Shown piece after piece: positions 7,700 through 54,499 of a stretch of 64,000 nt of DNA. The notes under the pieces are model-generated. The model had not been told where the DNA came from. It was given only the letters and a program-made list of their open reading frames with translations, and did not search any database. Position 1 is the stretch's first letter. Each line of letters opens with the position of its first letter. This stretch comes from Epiperipatus broadwayi (lineage: Eukaryota > Animalia > Onychophora): the NCBI GenBank assembly GCA_028023455.1, contig JAQFVV010000002.1, positions 26,846,001 to 26,910,000 of the forward strand. Reading direction: 5' to 3'. Both the position numbers and the translations under genes were made by a program.

Positions 7700-8300
7700 T
7701 TCAAATCAACTTTATCTTAGATTGTCCCCATCCCCAGACCGGTTTCGACCTATGGGTCTCTTCAGTAAGGAGTTGGGACACTAGATTCAAAAACCAACTC
7801 AAGCTAAGCATTTATCTAAAAGTTAATTGTCAAGAAGAAGATCTGAAACTTTTAGACATCTGCATTTATTAATGAAGTGAGACGTATTTTTTCTTACTTT
7901 AATATTGTGATCATTTCAGATAATATTATTTCTTTAAAGATATTCTTAATTTTGATAAAGTCTCTGTTTAAAAGATAGTATAGTAACACTACTCTGACTA
8001 AGTTATATACTGAGAGTATAAGCTGACATTAGCATCGTCTTCATCTGACAGTTTTATATTTGGGACTAATCATTCTTAATTTGTTTTTCTCTACTCCAAG
8101 TATGTTTACTCATGTATCATTATAGCTTTATTTTAAATATGGAAGACTCAATAGTTCGATCTATGGTATTCAAACATCTCATGATCTTTGGAATAAGTGA
8201 TAGTTGAAGAAATAAATTTATTTTAATCCCAGATTTCTTCAAAATTTTATCAATCCTATGCTTTTATAAGTACGTCATATCATCAGAAAATCATTTATTT
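7700..8300 (-). mobile_element. Penelope-like element 3' end / pseudo-LTR remnant
   Basis: Decayed minus-strand coding remnants lead into an intact minimal HHR at 7780-7723, the arrangement known for PLE pLTRs. Boundaries are approximate. Confidence 0.5.
7723..7780 (-). ncRNA. Minimal type I hammerhead ribozyme, canonical core
   Basis: Minus strand reads UGUCCC-aac-UCCUUA CUGAAGA GACC-CAUA-GGUC GAA ACCGGU C / UGGGGA-u-g-GGGACA. All core nucleotides present, 4-bp stem II, palindromic stem III, GUC cleavage between 7737 and 7736, two-part stem I. Confidence 0.88.
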
Positions 8301-9340: not shown

Positions 9341-9625
9341 TGCTAAGTTATAAAGAAATATCTTAATACTTAAACAGCTTTTCCAAAAATTTTGTATCAT
9401 TTGAACAATTTCAAGGATTTAAATGAAATTTTCTCTTAAAGTTAAGATTTAGAAAGATGAAGAAAATATTACAAAGCAATTTTGATTTAAATTAATATTT
9501 CTTGGGAAATACGCAAAAAAAAAGGGCATAGTATAGGTTCATAGTGGGCTAAAATTATCAATGAGAAAATAAAGATTATTGTTTATATGTATCTCAAATA
9601 CTTATTTTATGTAAATAAAAATAAA

Positions 9626-10266
9626 CCATTAAGCATCACATGATCACATTTCCTATACTAGCACATTAATTGTTGATAAACAGAGCAAAACTCTCCATAC
9701 AGTATTGCCACCTGTGCTAAACAGAGTAATCAATGGATGCCAGAAGGTTTGTGCATAAAATCCCTATCTAATGCCTACTCATCCAATATCCCCAGACTAG
9801 TTTCTGGCTTGTGGCCTTCGTCAGTGAGGAGCTTTGGATATGAGAGCACTGCATCTAGATCTTAGGATCTAATGCAACCCTCTAGCAACCACCTTTTATC
9901 TCTACTTAACTATAAAACTATGAGAATGAAATTGAAAACAAAAAATATTTTCAATCTAAGCTCAATAGCTTATATAGTCATATGGGTCTGAACTCAGTTC
10001 AGCACCCATACATTTTGGTGTCTTTGGCTCTTTTACAACCATAGCCACCACTATCCTATTAGGCAGGATTGGTGTTACACCATTAAGCATCACATGATCA
10101 CATTTCCTATACTAGCACATTAATTGTTGATAAACAGAGCAAAACTCTCCATACAGTATTGCCACCTGTGCTAAACAGAGTAATCAATGGATGCCAGAAG
10201 GTTTGTGCATAAAATCCCTATCTAATGCCTACTCATCCAATATCCCCAGACTAGTTTCTGGCTTGT
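9626..10266 (-). mobile_element. Family A retrozyme-like element, about 1.4 tandem units (period 454 bp)
   Basis: CATTAAGCATCACATGATCAC occurs at 9627 and 10081. Clearly homologous to the 465-bp unit at 25.3-27.6 kb and carries an HHR on the minus strand. Confidence 0.88.
9789..9830 (-). ncRNA. Family A minimal hammerhead (CUGACGA variant)
   Basis: UCCUCA CUGACGA a-GGC-CACAA-GCC-a GAA ACUAGU C / UGGGGA. It differs from the 25 kb copies only at the unconstrained core position N7. Confidence 0.78.
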
Positions 10267-22189: not shown

Positions 22190-22327
22190 AAACTATCCAT
22201 ACAGTAGCATCACTCAGTGGAAGCCAGAGTAATCAATGGATGCAAGAAGGCTTGTGCATAAAATCCCTATCTAGTGCCTACTCATCCAATATCCCCAGAC
22301 TAGTTTCTAGCTTGTGTTTTCATCAGT
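22190..22327 (-). mobile_element. Family A fragment with damaged HHR stem II
   Basis: GAGTAATCAATGGATGC...CATAAAATCCCTATCTAGTGCCTACTCATCCAATATCCCCAGACTAGTTTCT matches the unit. Core CTGATGA is retained. Confidence 0.85.
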
Positions 22328-24345: not shown

Positions 24346-25455
24346 CACATTTATTCTAGGAAAATCCTTATAAGATTTATTAAAATTGTTATAACTTATT
24401 TTTTAAGTGACACGAACTTCTTAAAAAGTTACTTTTATGATTTATTGTAAATAAATAACTATGTGATAGAAGCCCACTTACTATTTTGTCGAATAAAGGT
24501 AATTTATCTCCTTATATAATTAACGTTATGTGTGTTTAGCATGTGTTGTTTTTACTTTTAAAATATATTGTGTATATGAATAACAACATTCTGGGATATC
24601 AGTTCAATTTATAGAATATTTTTTCAATAATGGTATTACAATTTTACGTAAATTAAAGAAAAAAAAGTTTTTCAGTTCGTTTTTTAAAGCTTTTTCTGTT
24701 TTCTGAATATTATTATAGTAATTTTTATGTGTAAAAAAAAAAAAAAAATCTTTCAAATACGAGTAGTCTTTTATTTCTGGCTTTTATTGTATTATATTTG
24801 CATTAGCAATAAAACAATTGTAGTAAAGCCGTAGATTATTAGTCAGTACCATTAGGGTTTGGAGAGGGGCTGCAAGCGAGACTACATGAAAATGTTAGAA
24901 AGCGATCACTTGATGTATTCATGTAATGGAAATTTATATATAACCAGTGATATTATATTGTGAGGGGGAATTTAATAAATGAATTACAAATAGTTGTAAA
25001 AAATAAAACAATTAAGAAAAAAAAACTCATATAATACTCACTGGCAATGTTTAATTTTATCTGTCCTTGAAACCAATAGCATAGAATATTTGTTTTCTGT
25101 CTCTTGCTTGATTTTTAAAATTTTTTTTATCCTAGTCATTGTATCCAATTGCATTTCCATTTGAATCCTTTGAAAAAAAATTATTTGTGTAAAAAAGTCA
25201 CTGCATTTTAGATAATATTTTCTCAATCATGATCACTTTTAACCCTTGACATCAGACATTGAACATATATATCAGTAAACTATCACTAAACATCACATGA
25301 TCACTATCTCATACTAGCACAATAATTGTTATTAAACATTTCAAAATACAGCAAAACTCTCCATATAGTAGTGCCATCTTGTGCTAACAAGAGCAATCAA
25401 TGGATGCCAGAAGGCTTATGCATAAAATCCCTATCTAGTGCCTACTCATCCAATA

Positions 25456-25497
25456 TCCCCAGACTAGTTTCTGGCTTGTGGCCTTCATCAGTGAGGA
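25456..25497 (-). ncRNA. Family A minimal hammerhead (inverted unit)
   Basis: Reverse complement of UCCUCA CUGAUGA AGGCCACAAGCCA GAA ACUAGU C UGGGGA. Confidence 0.78.
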
Positions 25498-26091
25498 GCC
25501 TTGGATCTGAGAGCACTGCACCTAGATCTTAGGATCTAATGCAACCCTCCAGCACCCACCTTTTAACTCTATTTAACTACAAAACTATGAGAATGAAATT
25601 GAAAACACTATTAATATTTTCAATCCAAGCTCAATAGCTTATATAGTCATATGGGTCTGAACTCAATTCAGTACCCATACATTTTGGTGTCTTTGGCTCT
25701 TTAACAACCATAGCCACCACTATCCTATTAGGCAGGATTGGTGTTACCCAAACTCCTCTATATGGAGGTTTTGCTGTATTTTGAATGTTTAATAACAATT
25801 ATTGTGCTAGTATGAGATAGTGATCATGTGATGTTTAGTGGTTTAACACCAATCCTGCCTAATAGGATAGTAGTGGCTATGGTTGTTAAAGAGCCAAAGA
25901 CACCAAAATGTATGGGTACTGAATTGAGTTCAGACCCATATGACTATATAAGCTATTGAGCTTGGGTTGAAAATATTAATAGTGTTTTCAATTTCATTCT
26001 CATAGTTTTGTAGTTAAATAGAGTTAAAGGTGGGTGCTGGAGGGTTGCATTAGATCCTAAGATCTAGGTGCAGTGCTCTCAGATCCAAGGC

Positions 26092-26133
26092 TCCTCACTG
26101 ATGAAGGCCACAAGCCAGAAACTAGTCTGGGGA
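26092..26133 (+). ncRNA. Family A minimal hammerhead
   Basis: Stem I UCCUCA/UGGGGA, core CUGAUGA at 26098, stem II GGC/GCC, GAAA, palindromic stem III ACUAGU, GUC cleavage after 26127. Confidence 0.8.
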
Positions 26134-26556
26134 TATTGGATGAGTAGGCACTAGATAGGGATTTTATGCACAAGCCTTCTGGCATCCATTGATTGCTCTT
26201 GTTAGCACAAGATGGCACTACTATATGGAGAGTTTTGCTGTATTTTGAATTGTTTAATAACAATTATTGTGCTAGTATGAGATAGTGATCATGTGATGTT
26301 TAGTGGTTTAACACCAATCTGCCTAATAGGATAGTGGTGGCTATGGTTGTTAAAGAGCCAAAGACACCAAAATGTATGGGTACTGAATTGAGTTCAGACC
26401 CATATGACTATATAAGCTATTGAGCTTGGGTTGAAAATATTAATAGTGTTTTCAATTTCATTCTCATAGTTTTGTAGTTAAATAGAGTTAAAAGGTGGGT
26501 GCTGGAGGGTTGCATTAGATCCTAAGATCTAGGTGCAGTGCTCTCAGATCCAAGGC

Positions 26557-26598
26557 TCCTCACTGATGAAGGCCACAAGCCAGAAACTAGTCTGGGGA
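26557..26598 (+). ncRNA. Family A minimal hammerhead
   Basis: Identical motif 465 nt downstream of 26092. Confidence 0.8.
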
Positions 26599-27012
26599 TA
26601 TTGGATGAGTAGGCACTAGATAGGGATTTTATGCACAAGCCTTCTGGCATCCATTGATTGCTCTTGTTAGCACAAGATGGCACTACTATATGGAGAGTTT
26701 TGCTGTATTTTGAATTGTTTAATAACAATTATTGTGCTAGTATGAGATAGTGATCATGTGATGTTTAGTGGTTTAACACCAATCCTGCCTAATAGGATGG
26801 TGGTGGCTATGGTTGTTAAAGAGCCAAGAACCAAAATGTATGGGTACTGAATTGAGTTCAGACCCATATGACTATATAAGCTATTGAGCTTGGGTTGAAA
26901 ATATTAATAGTGTTTTCAATTTCATTCTCATAGTTTTGAGTTAAATAGGTTAAAAGGTGGGTGTGGAGGGTTGCATTAGATCCTAAGATCTAGGTGCAGT
27001 GCTCTCAGACAA

Positions 27013-27053
27013 GCCTCACTGATGAAGGCCACAAGCCAAAACTAGTCTGGGGA
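27013..27053 (+). ncRNA. Family A hammerhead, defective as written (core G12 missing)
   Basis: GCCAAAACTAGTC instead of GCCAGAAACTAGTC. This unit has many 1-nt deletions, possibly sequencing error. Confidence 0.55.
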
Positions 27054-27473
27054 TATTGGATGAGTAGGCACTAGATAGGGATTTTATGAAAGCCTTCTGG
27101 CATCCATTGATTGCTCTTGTTAGCACAAGATGGCCTACTATATGGAGAGTTTTGCTGTATTTTGAAATGTTTAATAACAATTATTGTGCTAGTATGAGAT
27201 AGTGATCATGTGATGTTTAGTGGTTTAACACCAATCCTGCCTAATAGGATAGTGGTGGCTATGGTTGTTAAAGAGCCAAAGACACAAAATGTATGGGTAC
27301 TGAATTGAGTTCAGACCCATATGACTATATAAGCTATTGAGCTTGGGTTGAAAATATTAATAGTGTTTTCAATTTCATTCTCATAGTTTTGTAGTTAAAT
27401 AGAGTTAAAAGGTGGGTGCTGGAGGGTTGCATTAGATCCTAAGATCTAGGTGCAGTGCTCTCAGATCCAAGGC

Positions 27474-27515
27474 TCCTCACTGATGAAGGCCACAAGCCAG
27501 AAACTAGTCTGGGGA
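27474..27515 (+). ncRNA. Family A minimal hammerhead
   Basis: Intact motif, CTGATGA at 27480. Confidence 0.8.
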
Positions 27516-27949
27516 TATTGGATGATTAGGCACTAGATAGGGATTTTATGCATAAGCCTTCTGGCATCCATTGATTGCTCTTGTTAGCACAAGATGGCAC
27601 TACTATATGGAGAGTTTTGCTGTATTTTGAAATGTTTAAAAACTATCACTAAGTTGGAATACACTGCTACATAAACAATAAATATAGAAAATCCATTGTA
27701 TTTGGATAGAACTCGAAGATCATATATATAAAATATTAAAATTTTTATTTTACTTAAAAAAATTCCCTCATAACAGTGTGAGTTCCTTTATTGGTAGCAA
27801 ATATTATGTTATACTAGAGACTTGCCATTCAACTTAAGAGATTAGCAGTGAATGTTTGGATCCTAATAGTTAAGATTCTTTTATCACTGAAATAATAATA
27901 AACATCAAAATGATTATGGCCAGAAAAAGAAAAGAAAGGGAAGTGAAAG

Positions 27950-30900
27950 AAAGTAAAGCTACTTTAAAATTAGTTTTGTGGAGACTATACAAATCAATTT
28001 ATTAACCACAAACACATCCATATATAGAACATGCTGGTCCAGTTTTCTGTTTATTTGATATTTTACAATTTTGTCTTTTAGTTTCTTTAGCAGCAAACTT
28101 TTCATTCTGAAATGTGTCAGCAACAAGTTTAATTGTAGCTCTCCATTGTATTCTATTCTCTGCCGTATCTTCCCAATGGAAACAATTGACATTGCATTTC
28201 TTTTAGAATGTCTTATAATATAGATGGGGTCTATCTCTTCTACAAAATTCATATTTAAGTTCATCATAAGACTCTTTTAAGAAATTATCCATTGTTCATT
28301 CCAATCCAACAATGATGTGAATTTATAGTAGTGTACTCAATAGTATTCATCTTGCAAACTGAAGAACATATTGATTGGTTTTACGATTTTGCCATTGTAT
28401 TTTTAAAATCTTACAGAATGCCCTTGAATGAAACTTTTCTAATGCTTTTATATTGTGCTGATAGTATCCAATTTTCACATCCATATAATAAATTAAGTAA
28501 AATAACAGCTTTATTTACAGCATAGTTGTAGTAGTTATTTCCCATATAGTCTGTCTTTTAATTTTTTAAAAGCAGCAGCAGCACATTGCAGTCTGTGTTG
28601 GATCTAAACATCAATCGAAACTGTAAAGTGCAGGAAAGGGTAGATAATAAAGCATTGTAAAAGTAGTAAAGTGTTTGGTCAATTGAATATTATATGATAT
28701 TTAAACTGGTTTACATTCTCAAGTTGATAACCAACATGCAGAGGATTTTTCTTCTGTCACTGAATGATATAGAACATGGAAGTTTTTTAAACATTAATTA
28801 ATAAAGTGAGATCTCGATAAGTTATTCAAAACTTTAAGATAATTCTGTGAATCATTTTTTAAACTAGGAAAAAATAACATAATCATTGGCATACTGTAAA
28901 TCTAGAATCCTAGATGATGTTCCTGTTTTTACTTTTAACCAGTTCAAATTAAAAATTTCATCATCAAATTTGTATTGTATCTTGATCTCTGTTCGATTAA
29001 ATTGTCTGTAAACAACTCCAAAGACAGCTATCATAAATATTAAAAACAATGTTGGAGCAAGTACACATCATTGTTTAACATCCATTTTCATTTCAAATTT
29101 CTCAGACTTTCCACCTGTAGTAATAACATTTTCTCTCATTCCATCATGTAGAAGCTGTACAATTTTGGTGACAACCAACACAATATAGCTGAATCAAATG
29201 CCTTGACCAAATCAATAAAAGTAATATATAAATCATTCTTTTGTTTCCACTACTTTTCTTGCATTTGTCTGACAACCAAAATCATATCTGTAGTGCTTCT
29301 TGATTCTCTAAAACCACATTACTGGAAGCAATCTATTCTACAAAATTCTTGAAAGTATTTTTTGCAATAATGGATAATAATGATATTCTATGATAATTAC
29401 CACAATCTTGTCTTCCTTATGTTTTTAAAAATGGAACAATAATTTTTTTAAGATCAGATGGCACAATTTTATGAGCCCAGATATTCCTAAAAAAATTTCA
29501 ATATTTTTGGAACGAACATATCACCATCATATTTTAAAACTGAAACCTTTTCAGTTTTAGGGTTATAAAGAGCTGTTTTAACTTCATTAAGCTGGATATC
29601 TTTGTCCAATTCTAAATGAGTAGACAAAATAGCTATATTATTAAAAGTCATCATGTCAGTTTTAGTATCATTATTCAAAGGATTATCAAAATATTCTTTT
29701 CACCTCTTCAAAATATCATTATCATCATATAAGAGGATGCAATTACTGGATTTAATAAGATTGTGACACCATTTCTCAGGAACACACGTTGCTTTCAATG
29801 CATCAAAAAAAAAAAGTCTAGAATGGCCATGATCAGCAAATGTCTAGCTTCTTTGCAGTTTTAACATACCAATTATGTTTGTCTTCTTATCAGTTGTTGA
29901 ACTTCTACCTTTAAATCTTTATATTTATTATAAAGTTTTATATTTGATCTATTATTTTACCAAGCAGAGAATGCCACATTTTTTTCAATTAAATCATTAA
30001 AAATATAATTGTCAGAAAACCATTCATGATAGGTTTTTTTTAGTAAACCCAAGAATAGATTTACTTGCATTCATAATGCACTCCTTAAGAGAATTCCATG
30101 CTTCAGTATATGACAATTTTAAAGATTCAAATTAACAATTTTAATGTTCAACAGCTGCTGAAATTTATTATAGATTCTTCTAGAGAACGAACATCAATTT
30201 TTTTGTGAATGTGATTGGAATAATATTTATTTTTTAATGCAATTATTATTTTAATCTTAGAGATTAATAATCTATGATCTGTCCATCATTCTGAGCTTAT
30301 AAGTATTTGAGCGATGTGAATTCTTAACAGTAATGTAATCTATTGAATGTCGTTGTTTTGATAATGGTTGAATCCATGTTCCTTTGTAGTGGTTTTTCTG
30401 CTCAACAAAGTGTCTATGATAGTCACTTCATGTGTTGTGCATTAATTCAATAATAATAAACCATTTGCATTTACAGCCCAATACTGTTATTGAAAACTTT
30501 TGGCCAAATGCTGCTTTTTGCACCAACACTTGCATTAAAATCTCCAAAAAGAAAAAAATCTATCTTTAATGGTATTTCTGTGTTAATGCTTTCCAGCAAG
30601 GAATGAAAACTTTTCTTCTCTGAATCTAAGGTTGTAGCATAAGCTCTGATAAAATTAGTCTAACACTATTAAGTAAGACAATTTTTAAAACCATTAATCT
30701 TCCAATAATAGAAAATAATAAATTAGATATTACAGCAAATCCACTAAACCATTTTTTTTTGCTAAGAAAAGCTATATTAATCTTAAATCTTTTGACAGTT
30801 TTAGTCACAAGTTCAGTCCTCCATTCTGGTTCTAAAGAGATTGTGTCAAGTAAAGGGTACATTCCACATACCTATATTTAGAAGAAAAAAAAGATTTATA

Positions 30901-44345: not shown

Positions 44346-45256
44346 ATTAATAATGTTTGTATATAATATTGAGGGCCCCTATAAAAAAGTTGAAATTATT
44401 ACTTACTGGGAAAATTTCCAAGTAGAAATGAAAAAATCATAATAAAGCTCAATAATTTAGAACCCAGTCACTATTTTTGTAATTAAATTTTTATGCAAAT
44501 ATCACCGAGAAACCAAAATTCAATATACAATACAAATAATGAGATCTATTGCTGTAAAACTAATTGTACAGAGAGGTGCGTAAAACAGATAACAGGTTAA
44601 AATCGTTTGAAATGGGTTAGATGCTTATGAATTATATCTCTGTGTTCACCATTGATAAACAAAGCCATTTCACGTGAGCGCACACCATGTGTGGACATTC
44701 TCATATTGTAAACTTTTATGAACGAAACTTATACTATTGAGGCATAATCAGACTATATACATTTGCTTTATTTTCTCAATAATAAATGTGAATTTATTGC
44801 TACAATAATAAATACATGGAAATAAAAATATAATTAATAAAAGATGTAAGATTTGTTTGTTGTCTACTTCTATCTATCATGCACTATCAGGAGTATGATC
44901 ACAATTATTTTACCATTCACACGACATAAATCTGAACACTAAAATAATTATACACATGTTTCTGATAGTTTGTGATACTTTAGGAAACTTATTACAACAA
45001 TAATTTTATGAAATAATCGAGTAGACTCAATTGCAAATATTATTTTAACAGATTCGCTGAATTCAAAACTTTTAGCAAATAATTCTATCAAATTTGACAA
45101 AAACTGATTGAATCCCCAATCTCCTTTTCTCTCAATAATTTATTAATATTTGGTGACATGCAGATACCTTGACTTTATTAACAGTCAAGAAATCATTGCC
45201 ATTTTAAGAAGTATTTGTTTATATTTCTCCATTTCTGTAGTCTATTGTAAGAGTAA

Positions 45257-45365
45257 GTAATCACGGATGCTAGATGGCAGTACTTATTAAATCCCTATAC
45301 AAGTGTGTCCTATCCACATTCCCAAACTAATTTCTGGCTTATGGCTTCATAATCTGGATCTAATA
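45257..45365 (-). mobile_element. Very degenerate family A fragment
   Basis: GTAATCACGGATGC...AAATCCCTAT...ATTTCTGGCTTATGGCTTCAT aligns loosely to the unit. Confidence 0.5.
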
Positions 45366-50200: not shown

Positions 50201-51690
50201 TATATATATTGTATTGAATGCCCAAGTGTTATAGTATTCAATACTGCTGCTTATAAGCAAATGCATATAGTAGTGTTTATTGACTTAGCCCACACATTGA
50301 TGTACCTCTTTGCACATAGTGAAAACTGATTATAAGATCTGCTGATAACTTTCTGTTTAAGCATAATAGCAAAAATTAAATTTATTTAGCATAATATTGA
50401 TCAGTAACTATATCACTGCCAGAATAGTATCATCATCAATTTACTTAACTTGATAACTCAAAGTATGATCTCAGTAAAATAATACTGATATATTTATTTC
50501 CCCAACAATTGTCACTCTTATGATTGACTATAAAAGTTACATTAGCTACCGCAAATCAATTTTATTTGAGGGTCAGAATTTTTCTACATCTTCTGATATC
50601 ATTTCTTCTATTTAAGGGTTGATTGTCTATTCTTATTATTCCTTGTTCTATCCTCATAAATTAGCCACAGCATAACACAAATCGGAAGCAGTTTGAATTC
50701 TTTTATTGCACTTTAGATGACCCCCAGTCACTTATAATTACAAACTGTATACTGTGCAACCAGATTGAGAAATAAGAATATAAATTGAAAATTACTGATA
50801 CTATCTAATTTTAAAATAATAATTAAATAAAATAACTTATTGTGGAAATGAAAAGAAATTTGAAGTATATACAAAATTATTTTGCATTCCCATTCAAATA
50901 CCTTAAATTACCCTTATGGACATGAGGTTTATCACCAAGCGCCCAAATTATTCTTATATACTTCTGGCCTTATTTACTGTCTTATTTAATACCTTTAACC
51001 ACTTCAAAGATATATTTGCTTCCTGCACAAAATCATTTGTTAATTATGTACAAACAATTTATTAGATATTTTCTTAAAATAAAAATGTATACATGGTTTA
51101 GTATCTTATAACGAAAAATACTAAAAAATATATATATATGAAAATATTGAAAAAGAATATGTACTTATATGTAACTTATGAAAATATTTTACTTAACTAT
51201 AGTTTCTGAAGATATTATTTTATAATAATTTTACTGTTCATTATCTTTTCTCCCCCATCTCCTATGCATTGTCTAATTCGGATAAACACACTTTTGACAG
51301 TGTTCAAAACAATCTTCTTCATAAGGTTGCTTTTTCTAATTTGAAAGTTTTTTTATTCTAAGTGTTAATTGTTCTATAATGGTTGGTTTTTATTCATATC
51401 ATTGTTGAAATTTATTTTTATAAATGTAATTTTTGCATCTTTATTTTTATGTAAATATAGTTGCTGAATTTCAGTTTTCCTTAGCTCTTTACTTGGTTGG
51501 CAAGCTATCAACTCAGGGATACATTTTATCTTGTAGGATAGATAGTAGGCAAGTTATAAGATAACTTTAGGTTCTAAATCTATTATTGCACCAGAGATTA
51601 CATTTTCATATAGCAAAGATCAACAAAAATTTGCAAATCACAAGAATTTTTTTTATTGCTATAAGAAAATTAAATAATAATAAAAAGGAT

Positions 51691-52111
51691 CACATGATCA
51701 CCATTTCTTATGTTAGCACATAACTCTTATTAACACAAGCAAAACTCTCCATTCAGTAGTGCCACTTAGTGCCAACCAGAGTAATCAATGGATGCCAGAA
51801 GGCTTGTGCATAAAATCCCTATCTAGTGCCTGCTCATCCAATATCTTCAGACTAGTTTCTGGCTTGTGGCCTTCATCAGTGAGGAGCTTTAGATCTGAGA
51901 ACCCTTCACCTAGATTTTAGGATCTAATGCAACCCTCCAGCAGCCATCTTTTATCTCTACTTAACTACAAAACTATGAAAATAAAATGGAAAACACAATA
52001 ATATTGGATGAGTAGGCACTAGATAGGGATTTTATGCACAAGCGTTCTGGCATACATTGGTTACTCTGCTTGCACTGAGTGGCACAACGGTATGGAGAGT
52101 TTTGCCTGTGT
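51691..52111. mobile_element. Family A head-to-head insertion, 13-bp TSD
   Basis: Antisense segment 51691-52000 (with HHR 51844-51885) plus sense segment 52001-52111. TAATAAAAAGGAT at 51678-90 and 52112-24. Confidence 0.88.
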
Positions 52112-54499
52112 TAATAAAAAGGATATTGTCACTGTGATAGGCCAGAAACACCTGAAGAAAAGTGGAGAATAATACTACATGAAATGTTGTGTAATTACTA
52201 ACCTGTGTTGTCTATTTGTGTGTTATTACTAACAAGTTTTTTACATTTGGAAAGTTTAAATAAAGTTTAAAATTTTTCTATACATTCAACATTCACTCAT
52301 AGATGATGGAAATAGTTCAACATATCACATCAAATAAAAAGAACTATGATAGTGTTGTACATGATATAAATGAGCATTTTTTTAAGTTAAATGATTAATA
52401 AATTTGTTGGCACTTGTCAACATTCATACTGAGAATGACAATACTAATTTTAAAGTAATATATATGATATATTATTAATATTTTTACATATAAATTCAAA
52501 TGAAAATCCTTACACCCTGTAAAAAGACAATATACTGACAGCAATTTTAGATATAGATGAACAAATAACGAATTACGATTAATCAATCATATCAATTTTT
52601 TTTCCCTCTCATTAAAGATTCATTCTATTAATGATAAGAAAAAAAAGATATTTCAAATATTCATAAAACATTGCATATCATGTAAGCAAACGTGTCTGAA
52701 GAAAAATATAGCTTTAAATACAGTTAAAGTTAATAGTGAAAAAGTTGTGAAATATTAAACAAAATAAATTGAATGTTCATATCTCTAATTCTAGCATTTA
52801 AGCTTTAGTTGTAACTTCATTGATTTGCTTGCAATTTTGAATTCACCAGATTGTTATAATAAGTGTGAACACATGATGGATTGTTTCTTGGGATTCAGTT
52901 CTTTACAGTTTTGTTTTCTTATGAGCATTTTCCTTTCTTTAATGAATTTCTTGTTATTCTTGCTTCTAGATTATTTCTCTTTTGAAGAGTAAGAGTTTTA
53001 TCTATTAATTGTCATCATTTCACATGGAGAATTTCAGTCCGCCATGTCGTAAGAGTTAAATGGCATGTTCAAACATCTGGAAACAAATTTTTGTAGGCCA
53101 AGCAGTTATTTCTTATCAGGATTTGTTATAATTGATGCATTTGGAATTATTCAGTCACATCTTCCAGTGTTTAATGATATGTAGTGGGTATTTTCTATAC
53201 TGCTATTAGTAAATCAACTTCAGCTTTTGCATGAATTTAAGTTTTTTTAGTTTATTGCACTATTAGCTAAATGTAGATTGGAATTTTACTCGACACTAAA
53301 TCTATTTATGGGCTCAATCAGTGTGAATCTAGTAGCTAATCACTGAAACATTAATTATATTTAATATTTGAATCAAGAGTTTTATATATTCATAACAAAT
53401 AGTATTTATATAAATAAATCAGTTATAAAGTACTTTTTAATGTTAACCATATTCCAGTTATTATGGATAAATTCTTCAAGATGATGATCTTCAACATTAT
53501 GTGCGGAGAGTTTTCTACTAGTGCACTGTTCACCACACTCAAAAGTGACTAGACACCACTCCATATTTTTACTTCTATTTTTATGCTTGATAATTTTTAA
53601 AATATTGTAGTAATATAATAAACTGTTCCTATTATTTTGGATAATTTTTATATACAGTATATGTATATAAATTCTAACAATTTTAATAACTCTATAAATA
53701 ATTATTGGCTATTAAATATGTAATTCTGAGAATACTTAACAATATGTAAATAAATAAACTCTCAATGCACTTACCATAATTATAATTCACAAGTCAGAAT
53801 TGACTAGATTCATTTTAAAATAAATGAAAGCACTGAAAAACCCCAATGAGCAGCTCACTCTACATTTTAGGTTTACTGGCAGTTAGTTTACATATAGATC
53901 GCATGGTGTTCTCAGTACTTTTGCATTATTTAATCTATATTCGAGCTGGTAAACAATTATATTTAGATTCATTTTAACAAACTTGGCAAAGTACAGTACA
54001 TCATTCTCATTCTGATAAACCAGCATTGATATGATTCTAATAAATCTGATCCAAGAATTATTATTATAATATGCACATTTGGAGTTCTCTTTTCCACAAA
54101 TATTATATATGTATAAATACATATTATGCTTAGTAGATATTCACAAACTATAGATGTAAATATTAAAATTATGGGAATTTTATATATTTATCTAGAATTA
54201 TTTCAACTATGGTTAACAACCAATTCATAACTGGTACTGCAGATTGAAACATCATCTAGAAATATATATATATATATATGTTTTATTCAATTCACCTTAA
54301 GCCATTCAATTCACCTTAAGCCAAAAATGGACCTGCTTTTAGTTTAATAGCCTAGATTACATAAGAGTTATAAGTCAAACATAAATACTTTATATGTATG
54401 AAAAAAGGAATAATGTCAACTTCTTACATATTTTCACAAATAAATAAACCCCTCTTAATAGATTTTCATAATCATTATAGGTATAAACATAGAAATCAC

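Follow-up and report, generated by a model that had tools for sequence, protein, structure and literature searches.

The window analyzed here is a 64-kb stretch of the genome of the onychophoran Epiperipatus broadwayi, and the feature that concerns us is an insertion of 2.35 kb at positions 25277-27652, built of inverted and tandem copies of a 465-nucleotide (nt) unit that carries a hammerhead ribozyme motif. It is a young and typical insertion of a very abundant element of a known kind, not of a new kind. We consider it likely that the element is a high-copy, noncoding element of 465/466 nt of the animal non-LTR (lacking long terminal repeats) retrozyme type, and that it was mobilized in the manner of Penelope-like elements (PLEs).

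The insertion opens with a copy of a 13-bp target-site duplication (TSD), AAACTATCACTAA (25277-25289), read from the sequence as an exact repeat. This is followed by an antisense "tail" arm of 457 nt (25290-25746, minus strand) that is 99% complementary to the sense units, by a filler of 11 nt, CCCAAACTCCT, at the head-to-head junction (25747-25757), and by a sense arm of 4.05 units (25758-27639, plus strand) whose first and last nucleotides correspond to about unit position 460 and to unit position 31, respectively. The second, exact copy of the TSD closes the insertion (27640-27652). Tandem Repeats Finder (TRF) reports a period of 465, 4.1 copies and 97% matches for the sense array, and a repeat finder recovers inverted arms of 452 nt that are 99% complementary. 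The layout bears out the first-pass annotation, which had described one antisense unit joined by about 11 nt of filler to about four sense units, the whole 2.35 kb lying between exact 13-bp duplications. It had also pointed to a match between the left duplication and the element, and this match is present: CACTAA, the 6 nt with which the left 13-mer closes, continues the element sequence as unit positions 74-79. We read this overlap as probable microhomology between primer and template. The antisense arm has its outer end at unit position 73 (79 if the CACTAA microhomology is counted) and its inner end at position 83. Its outer end lies 42-48 nt past the terminus of the sense arm, which stops at ...GAAATGTTTAA at unit position 31, within the loop of a small hairpin and at the usual fixed end of the family.

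The unit has a GC content of 38.7% and lacks an LTR, a primer-binding site (PBS) and a polypurine tract (PPT). Stops interrupt all three sense frames, as had been noted before, and the longest stop-free run in the sense frames of a unit trimer is 39 amino acids (aa). Also present are the local hairpins named in the earlier description (TATGGGT/ACCCATA, TAGATC/GATCTA and TCTTGT/ACAAGA). Sense unit 3 (26692-27143, plus strand, 452 nt) is damaged by 13 single-base deletions, through which its hammerhead (27014-27049) has lost G12 as well as some of the 5' strand of helix I, whereas the neighboring units are almost free of such deletions. These deletions represent either decay or an assembly error, and they look more like a long-read consensus error than like biology. 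The 465-nt unit is without any CpG; the 64-kb window as a whole has a GC content of 25.8%, a CpG observed/expected ratio of 0.27 and no open reading frame (ORF) of 130 aa or more.

The hammerhead motif and its sister families

A hammerhead had been predicted in each unit of the insertion, and intact motifs are found in four of the five. One lies on the minus strand in the antisense arm (25457-25496) and three lie on the plus strand, in sense unit 1 (26093-26132, predicted cut after 26127), sense unit 2 (26558-26597, predicted cut after 26592) and sense unit 4 (27475-27514, predicted cut after 27509). There are four and not five because unit 3 has lost G12. The motif is composed of CCUCA, CUGAUGA, A-GGC-CACAA-GCC-A, GAAA, CUAG, UC and UGGGG, and the core boxes CUGAUGA, GAAA and GUC are present in order and spacing at 26098-26127 and in three other units. 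Within the window the motif pattern gives six matches where 0.03 would be expected, these matches being copies of one repeat and not independent of one another. Genome-wide, the exact 35-nt motif occurs 17,497 times compared with 0 times for the reversed control, and a looser pattern that leaves out the 465-nt family finds 11,463 further motifs, again with 0 in the control.

Helix I is formed by UCCUCA/UGGGGA (6 bp) and then AUCCAA/UUGGAU, and helix II by GGC/GCC. In sister families the core is kept and helix II is compensated (AGC/GCU, GACC/GGUC and GAGC/GCUC). Stem III is palindromic with letters that differ across families (CUAG, CAUG and CCGG), and a palindromic hexamer is present in seven of the seven variants compared. 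Within a monomer, stem III would amount to 2 bp with a 2-nt loop; because ACUAGU is self-complementary, a full stem III is predicted only between two copies. An unpaired or extra A follows position 9 and another A precedes G12. At positions 10.1/11.1, the relatives have A.A in one sister family, U-A in two and G-C in two. Thus, of the earlier description as a minimal type I hammerhead, the type I core boxes stand but the "clean minimal" form does not, given the A.A at positions 10.1/11.1 and a stem III that forms only in a dimer. The copy counts relative to the control, together with the covarying sister families, are evidence against the motif being a chance match or, as far as sequence comparison can indicate, a dead one.

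The predicted fold of the RNA differs between strands. A plus-strand monomer cut at the predicted site folds with -163.3 kcal/mol (z -7.8) and contains helices I and II as well as a long extension of helix I, and the minus-strand monomer reaches -106.2 kcal/mol (z -2.8). A module of about 165 nt that comprises this long stem (about unit positions 274-438) is found with 80-90% identity in contigs of four organisms. The depth of these contigs is far greater over the module than over the rest of the unit, and the relatives that share it are far more abundant. Judged from these comparisons, the ~165-nt hammerhead module is conserved among families and related species. The view that the family is a distinct one, set apart from others, does not hold, given that the exact hammerhead occurs in so many copies and that the module is common to sister families.

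Two further observations concern the relatives of this motif. On the minus strand at 7737-7765, the window contains the hammerhead of a different, very abundant family, with CUGAAGA, a helix II of GACC/GGUC and a stem III of ACCGGU. The proximal part of its helix I is as in the 465-nt family and the distal part is compensated, AUCCAA/UUGGAU being replaced by GUCCC/GGGAC. Furthermore, among the genome matches listed, neighboring occurrences of this same 35-nt hammerhead are spaced by 427, 433, 454-456 and 466 nt. Several sub-families that differ in unit length thus share one ribozyme.

The footprint of the family in the genome

The genome assembly comprises 5.6 Gb in 18,588 contigs, and when it was searched with a single unit, at least 200 matches (1142 first-look candidates) with 97-100% identity were found on many contigs. 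Copies this similar at so many loci support the suggestion that the family has been active recently. For comparison, we mapped 33 other insertions of the family from the same genome against the unit, adding the window copy where stated. In 32 of these 33, a minus arm is followed by a plus arm such that the 5' ends of the units face each other, and in 28 of 33 exact direct repeats of 9-16 bp stand right at both ends. With the window copy included, 24 of 29 TSDs are 12-14 bp long, with a mode of 13. The inversion is therefore no peculiarity of the window copy but the rule for the family. The same orientation prevails in pairs of neighboring hammerheads on opposite strands: among the matches listed, the exact motif gives 11 minus-then-plus pairs and 0 plus-then-minus pairs, and the sister families, for which the inversion is likewise the rule, give 15 and 0.

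The two termini of an insertion are unlike each other. One end falls at unit position 13-31, mostly at 28-31 within ...GAATTGTTTAA, and the other at 63-89, so that all of the 29 insertions mapped have a tail, 32-58 nt long, on one side only. In the window copy, it is the short left arm that bears this extension, and the long right arm ends at position 31. At both ends the edge of the TSD shares a mean of 1.8-1.9 nt with the element, compared with 0.40 nt expected, and the 6-nt CACTAA of the window copy is the extreme of this distribution. At the center, most junctions overlap by 1-5 nt; a few contain 1-11 nt of filler, the window copy among these. Arm lengths within insertions range widely, from 27 to 4296 nt, with inner ends at differing unit positions, and the arms of one insertion (locus L031) contain nine or more near-identical units. 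A search for a target-site motif showed an AT-rich target with a weak excess of C at the bases before and after the TSD, in a sample too small for more to be drawn from it.

An older copy of the family, with 85-90% identity, lies at 51678-52124 of the window; it too consists of twin arms with one long and one short end, and it has an exact 13-bp TSD, TAATAAAAAGGAT. The mechanism has therefore been in operation for a long time.

Template, priming and rival explanations

Variants that the two arms have in common bear directly on the template. Among the 186 unit copies over which variants were called, 24T>A and 410C>T are confined to the outermost units of both window arms and occur nowhere else in the sample; the inner sense units of the window copy carry 24T and 410C. 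At L033, 333C>T is present in the two outer units of both arms and missing from the inner units, and at L044, 250A>G is mirrored between the arms from the outside in, in the same way. Four shorter insertions (L042, L048, L057 and L059) have arms that share private variants at the same index counted from the outside. In all of these, the register is set from the outer ends and not from the center. This points to both arms having been copied from the 3' region of one heterogeneous multimeric template, since such a template would produce an outer-end register, whereas a monomer circle would give identical units. The shared variants fit cDNA synthesis from both target ends on one template. They also uphold the claim that the whole 2.35 kb arose in a single event, given that the private variants 24T>A and 410C>T are common to the outermost units of both arms. 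Nor would center-aligned gene conversion be expected to give an outer-end register.

What the sequences show is the structure of the insertion, which recurs throughout the family, together with the microhomologies, the variants common to both arms and a genome rich in PLEs; from these we infer an RNA template, a PLE enzyme and the following order of steps. An endonuclease would nick the target with a stagger of about 13 bp, and each exposed 3' end would pair over a few nt with the same multimeric element RNA, in its 3' region, the first at about unit position 31 and the other 32-58 nt further downstream. Each target end would then prime cDNA inwards, the two cDNAs would be joined head to head via short microhomology or filler, and gap repair would yield the 13-bp duplication. 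Because stem III (ACUAGU) is predicted to form between two copies, multimeric transcripts could be cut to 465-nt monomers, and monomers from this predicted cleavage may be circularized. The RNA from which the window insertion was copied would have been left uncut at four or more sites. We tentatively suggest, as a possibility on the doubtful side, that the productive template is a long linear multimer that escapes cutting by the ribozyme, with both target 3' ends priming the same RNA about 42 nt apart. If this is true, cleavage and circular RNA would either branch off from transposition or serve to regulate it. The A.A at positions 10.1/11.1, which is kept in sister families with a compensated helix II, could then represent a tuned-down ribozyme that spares multimers.

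Rolling-circle reverse transcription would also produce multimeric cDNA, from a 465-nt circular monomer RNA that had been cut by the ribozyme and ligated. A circular RNA intermediate has been proposed in the literature (PMC7229834; PMC6765202), the plus-strand RNA is strongly structured, and arms of up to nine or more near-identical units, as at L031, are what such copying could give. However, differences among the units follow an order that, counted from the outer ends, is the same in both arms (24A/410T in the outermost units and 24T/410C in the inner ones, with L033 and L044 alike). Moreover, the predicted ribozyme cut is not a place where inner ends of arms accumulate: within 10 nt of it lie 3 of 58, against 2.6 expected. 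We therefore regard a circular monomer template as unlikely. The earlier proposal of a "circular or multimeric" RNA survives in its multimeric part; its circular part, if a monomer circle is meant, is disfavored by the ordered variants among units.

Where the inner ends do accumulate is at unit positions 424-465, which hold 17 of the 58 against 5.2 expected (P ~1e-5, for a zone defined after the data had been seen). This zone could be a candidate transcription start or a stop for the reverse transcriptase at the foot of the long stem, and PLE pseudo-LTRs (pLTRs) are known to carry a promoter (PMC6765202). The zone (at window positions 26650-26691, for example) surrounds the TCTTGT/ACAAGA hairpin. 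A separate observation on the inner parts of the arms is the variant 204G>A (GGG to GGA), which occurs in five insertions, namely the window copy (region of 25635), L031, L032, L053 and L060, and which in four of the five lies in the innermost unit of an arm, that is, in the part copied last.

The inverted arm could instead have formed by snap-back: in place of two cDNAs primed at the two target ends, there would be just one, started at one of these ends, which folds over and copies itself. This would account for the private variants common to both arms, and many of the center junctions do lie in the region of local palindromes at unit positions 424-465. Nevertheless, the arms are very unequal (27 to 4296 nt), with inner ends at differing unit positions. 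The outer termini are, in addition, systematically unlike (31 compared with 63-89), and each has microhomology to the edge of its own TSD, whereas a fold-back copy would be expected to reach the terminus of the first arm and continue into the flank. We judge snap-back to be quite improbable.

The last alternative is an element that moves at the level of DNA, either a foldback-type transposon or a satellite spread by recombination or extrachromosomal circles, in which the hammerhead would be incidental. Foldback elements have inverted repeat arms built of tandem units, which the arms seen here resemble; moreover, the ribozyme is not recognized by Rfam, and a search for RNA runs found none. We looked for the fixed terminal inverted-repeat ends of a foldback transposon and found instead that the termini vary over zones of about 20 nt, differ between the two ends (13-31 and 63-89) and have microhomology to the target. 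A DNA-level origin is very improbable when the arms are unequal and joined at the center at random points or through filler, when insertions with duplications of about 13 bp are scattered over many contigs, the helices covary across sister families with 11,463 related motifs against 0 in the control, and the fold of the RNA is strand-asymmetric. Readings as a satellite alone, as a foldback DNA transposon or as an assembly artefact were rejected because the structure recurs at independent loci with duplications.

Penelope-like elements and other known systems

Elements of this kind are thought to derive from the pLTR of PLEs and to be mobilized in trans by the PLE reverse transcriptase and GIY-YIG endonuclease. 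Animal non-LTR retrozymes are tandem hammerhead repeats that yield circles of 170-400 nt, and PLEs have been called "a strong candidate" for their mobilization (Cervera and de la Pena 2020, PMC7229834). A 2026 survey by Li, Clavereau and Pollet gives consensus lengths of 51-972 bp and describes homology to the pLTR (bioRxiv 10.64898/2026.07.22.740005). The 465-nt family agrees with non-LTR retrozymes in its low GC content, the lack of LTR, PBS and PPT, TSDs of more than 4 bp, a self-paired plus-strand RNA and the presence of PLEs in the genome. The identification as a noncoding, hammerhead-bearing tandem retroelement of this kind, made in the first-pass annotation, is supported by the tandem structure found with TRF, by motifs in four of five units and by the TSDs. 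At 465 nt, its unit exceeds the RNAs of 170-400 nt in the 2020 paper, yet it lies inside the range of 51-972 bp of the 2026 survey, contrary to the earlier view of it as large. The variants, known here from DNA, depart from the retrozyme model in that they argue for a linear multimer and not for a monomer circle as template. Inverted arms, a one-sided tail and mapped termini are not described in either of these two publications (PMC7229834; bioRxiv 10.64898/2026.07.22.740005).

The hallmarks of PLEs, by contrast, are that copies are truncated at the 5' end and form partial tandems, that an inverted 5'-truncated copy lies next to them, and that a tail of 30-40 bp is present at one end only (Craig et al. 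2021, PMC8557442). The 465-nt family displays every hallmark listed there, including the partial tandems, the inverted 5'-truncated copy and the tail at one end, and because of this match the footprint is direct structural support for mobilization by PLEs, the kind of element itself being known already. A PLE of the same genome shows the twin-arm structure too: locus L069 (934-3021) is a twin-arm insertion of two 5'-truncated Penelope-like copies, with arms that are 100% identical and a GIY-YIG match in each. Unlike PLEs, the 465-nt element has no ORF, its tail measures 32-58 nt rather than 30-40 bp, and it is flanked by clear duplications of about 13 bp, whereas the Naiad and Chlamys PLEs often insert in microsatellites (PMC8557442). 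The genome contains 10,242 candidates for the GIY-YIG domain (PF01541), with open frames of up to 901 aa and many minus/plus pairs. A 538-aa ORF fragment at L076 has no match in Pfam and resembles atlas clusters with HTH_animal/RVT_1/GIY-YIG.

The hammerhead itself points in the same direction. In metazoan and PLE hammerheads, helix I measures 6 bp and helix II is short, stem III/loop 3 is palindromic, and an additional nucleotide follows position 9 (Cervera and de la Pena 2014, PMC4209133). They act as dimers and have low activity in vitro (PMC4209133; PMC6765202), the dimeric form being ascribed to Lunse, Weinberg and Breaker in the citation given by PMC6765202. Like the type I motifs of PLEs and metazoans, the motif of the 465-nt family has the core CUGANGA...GAAA...GUC and a helix I of 6 bp that leads into an internal loop; its helix II is short, and stem III comprises 1-2 bp with the palindromic ACUAGU. 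It also has the A after position 9 and many compensated families in one genome (PMC4209133). It differs in the A before G12, which results in A.A at 10.1/11.1 in place of the highly conserved G-C, a position at which close relatives have U-A, in having no Rfam match, and in that its activity is predicted.

Several points weigh against the interpretation as a PLE-mobilized retrozyme. The A.A at positions 10.1/11.1 replaces the conserved G10.1-C11.1, and the Rfam hammerhead models give no match at the gathering score in the window or at E<=10 in 25200-27700; the sole Rfam match is a spurious miRNA-like one across the inversion hairpin. In a short isolated hammerhead segment, a competing hairpin (CCAGA/UCUGG) is favored over the catalytic fold, a result that we counted neither for nor against activity. 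When the unit was compared with 12 GIY-YIG loci, no autonomous partner was found among them. The 3' untranslated region of L069 has 16 nt of identity (unit positions 13-28) followed by AT-rich similarity (through 73), but this similarity is weak and lies off the terminus, about 190 nt inside the end of the element. A search of sequencing runs found none recorded as RNA. Lastly, we looked in the assembly for an allele with an empty site and found no haplotig without the insertion; the sequence next to it is unique on the left and, over the first ~250 nt, on the right.

A twofold priming event of this kind is reportedly known from LINE-1, where the twin priming associated with Ostertag and Kazazian (2001) is said to involve cDNA primed from both nicked strands and to leave 5' inversions. 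The resemblance lies in one set of TSDs that encloses an inversion whose junction has microhomology. In LINE-1 only a minority of insertions are inverted in this way, whereas here inversion is the rule. Poly(A) is also absent here, the template would be a tandem multimer, and the two priming sites would be restricted to defined zones of it, about 42 nt apart.

Although the locus is ordinary for its genome, the family is useful, being very young, short and extremely abundant, and each of its insertions records the start, the stop and the joining of two cDNAs. The link between retrozymes and PLEs in the literature consists mainly of co-occurrence and similarity to the pLTR. The PLE footprint, the mirrored variants and the fact that cDNA ends show no pile-up at the ribozyme cut bear on this link in a way that can be scaled to thousands of insertions, and these results also question the monomer circle as template. 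What we add is the mirror test of the arms, the lack of such a pile-up of ends, the variant core with A.A and its covarying sister families, and the copy count. The PLE transposition cycle has been said to have "still undefined features" (PMC8557442), and the family is a good substrate for studying PLE integration; if both target ends do prime one linear multimer, its thousands of fresh insertions could be read as a natural record of that undefined mechanism.

Decayed antisense copies or fragments of the family lie elsewhere in the window, at 9622-10266 (91% identity; a TSD was sought for this copy and not found), 22199-22327 (86%) and 45256-45350 (76%). Adjoining the insertion on its right side, 27890-28139 belongs to another high-copy repeat, with 2820 first-look candidates at 76-82% identity.

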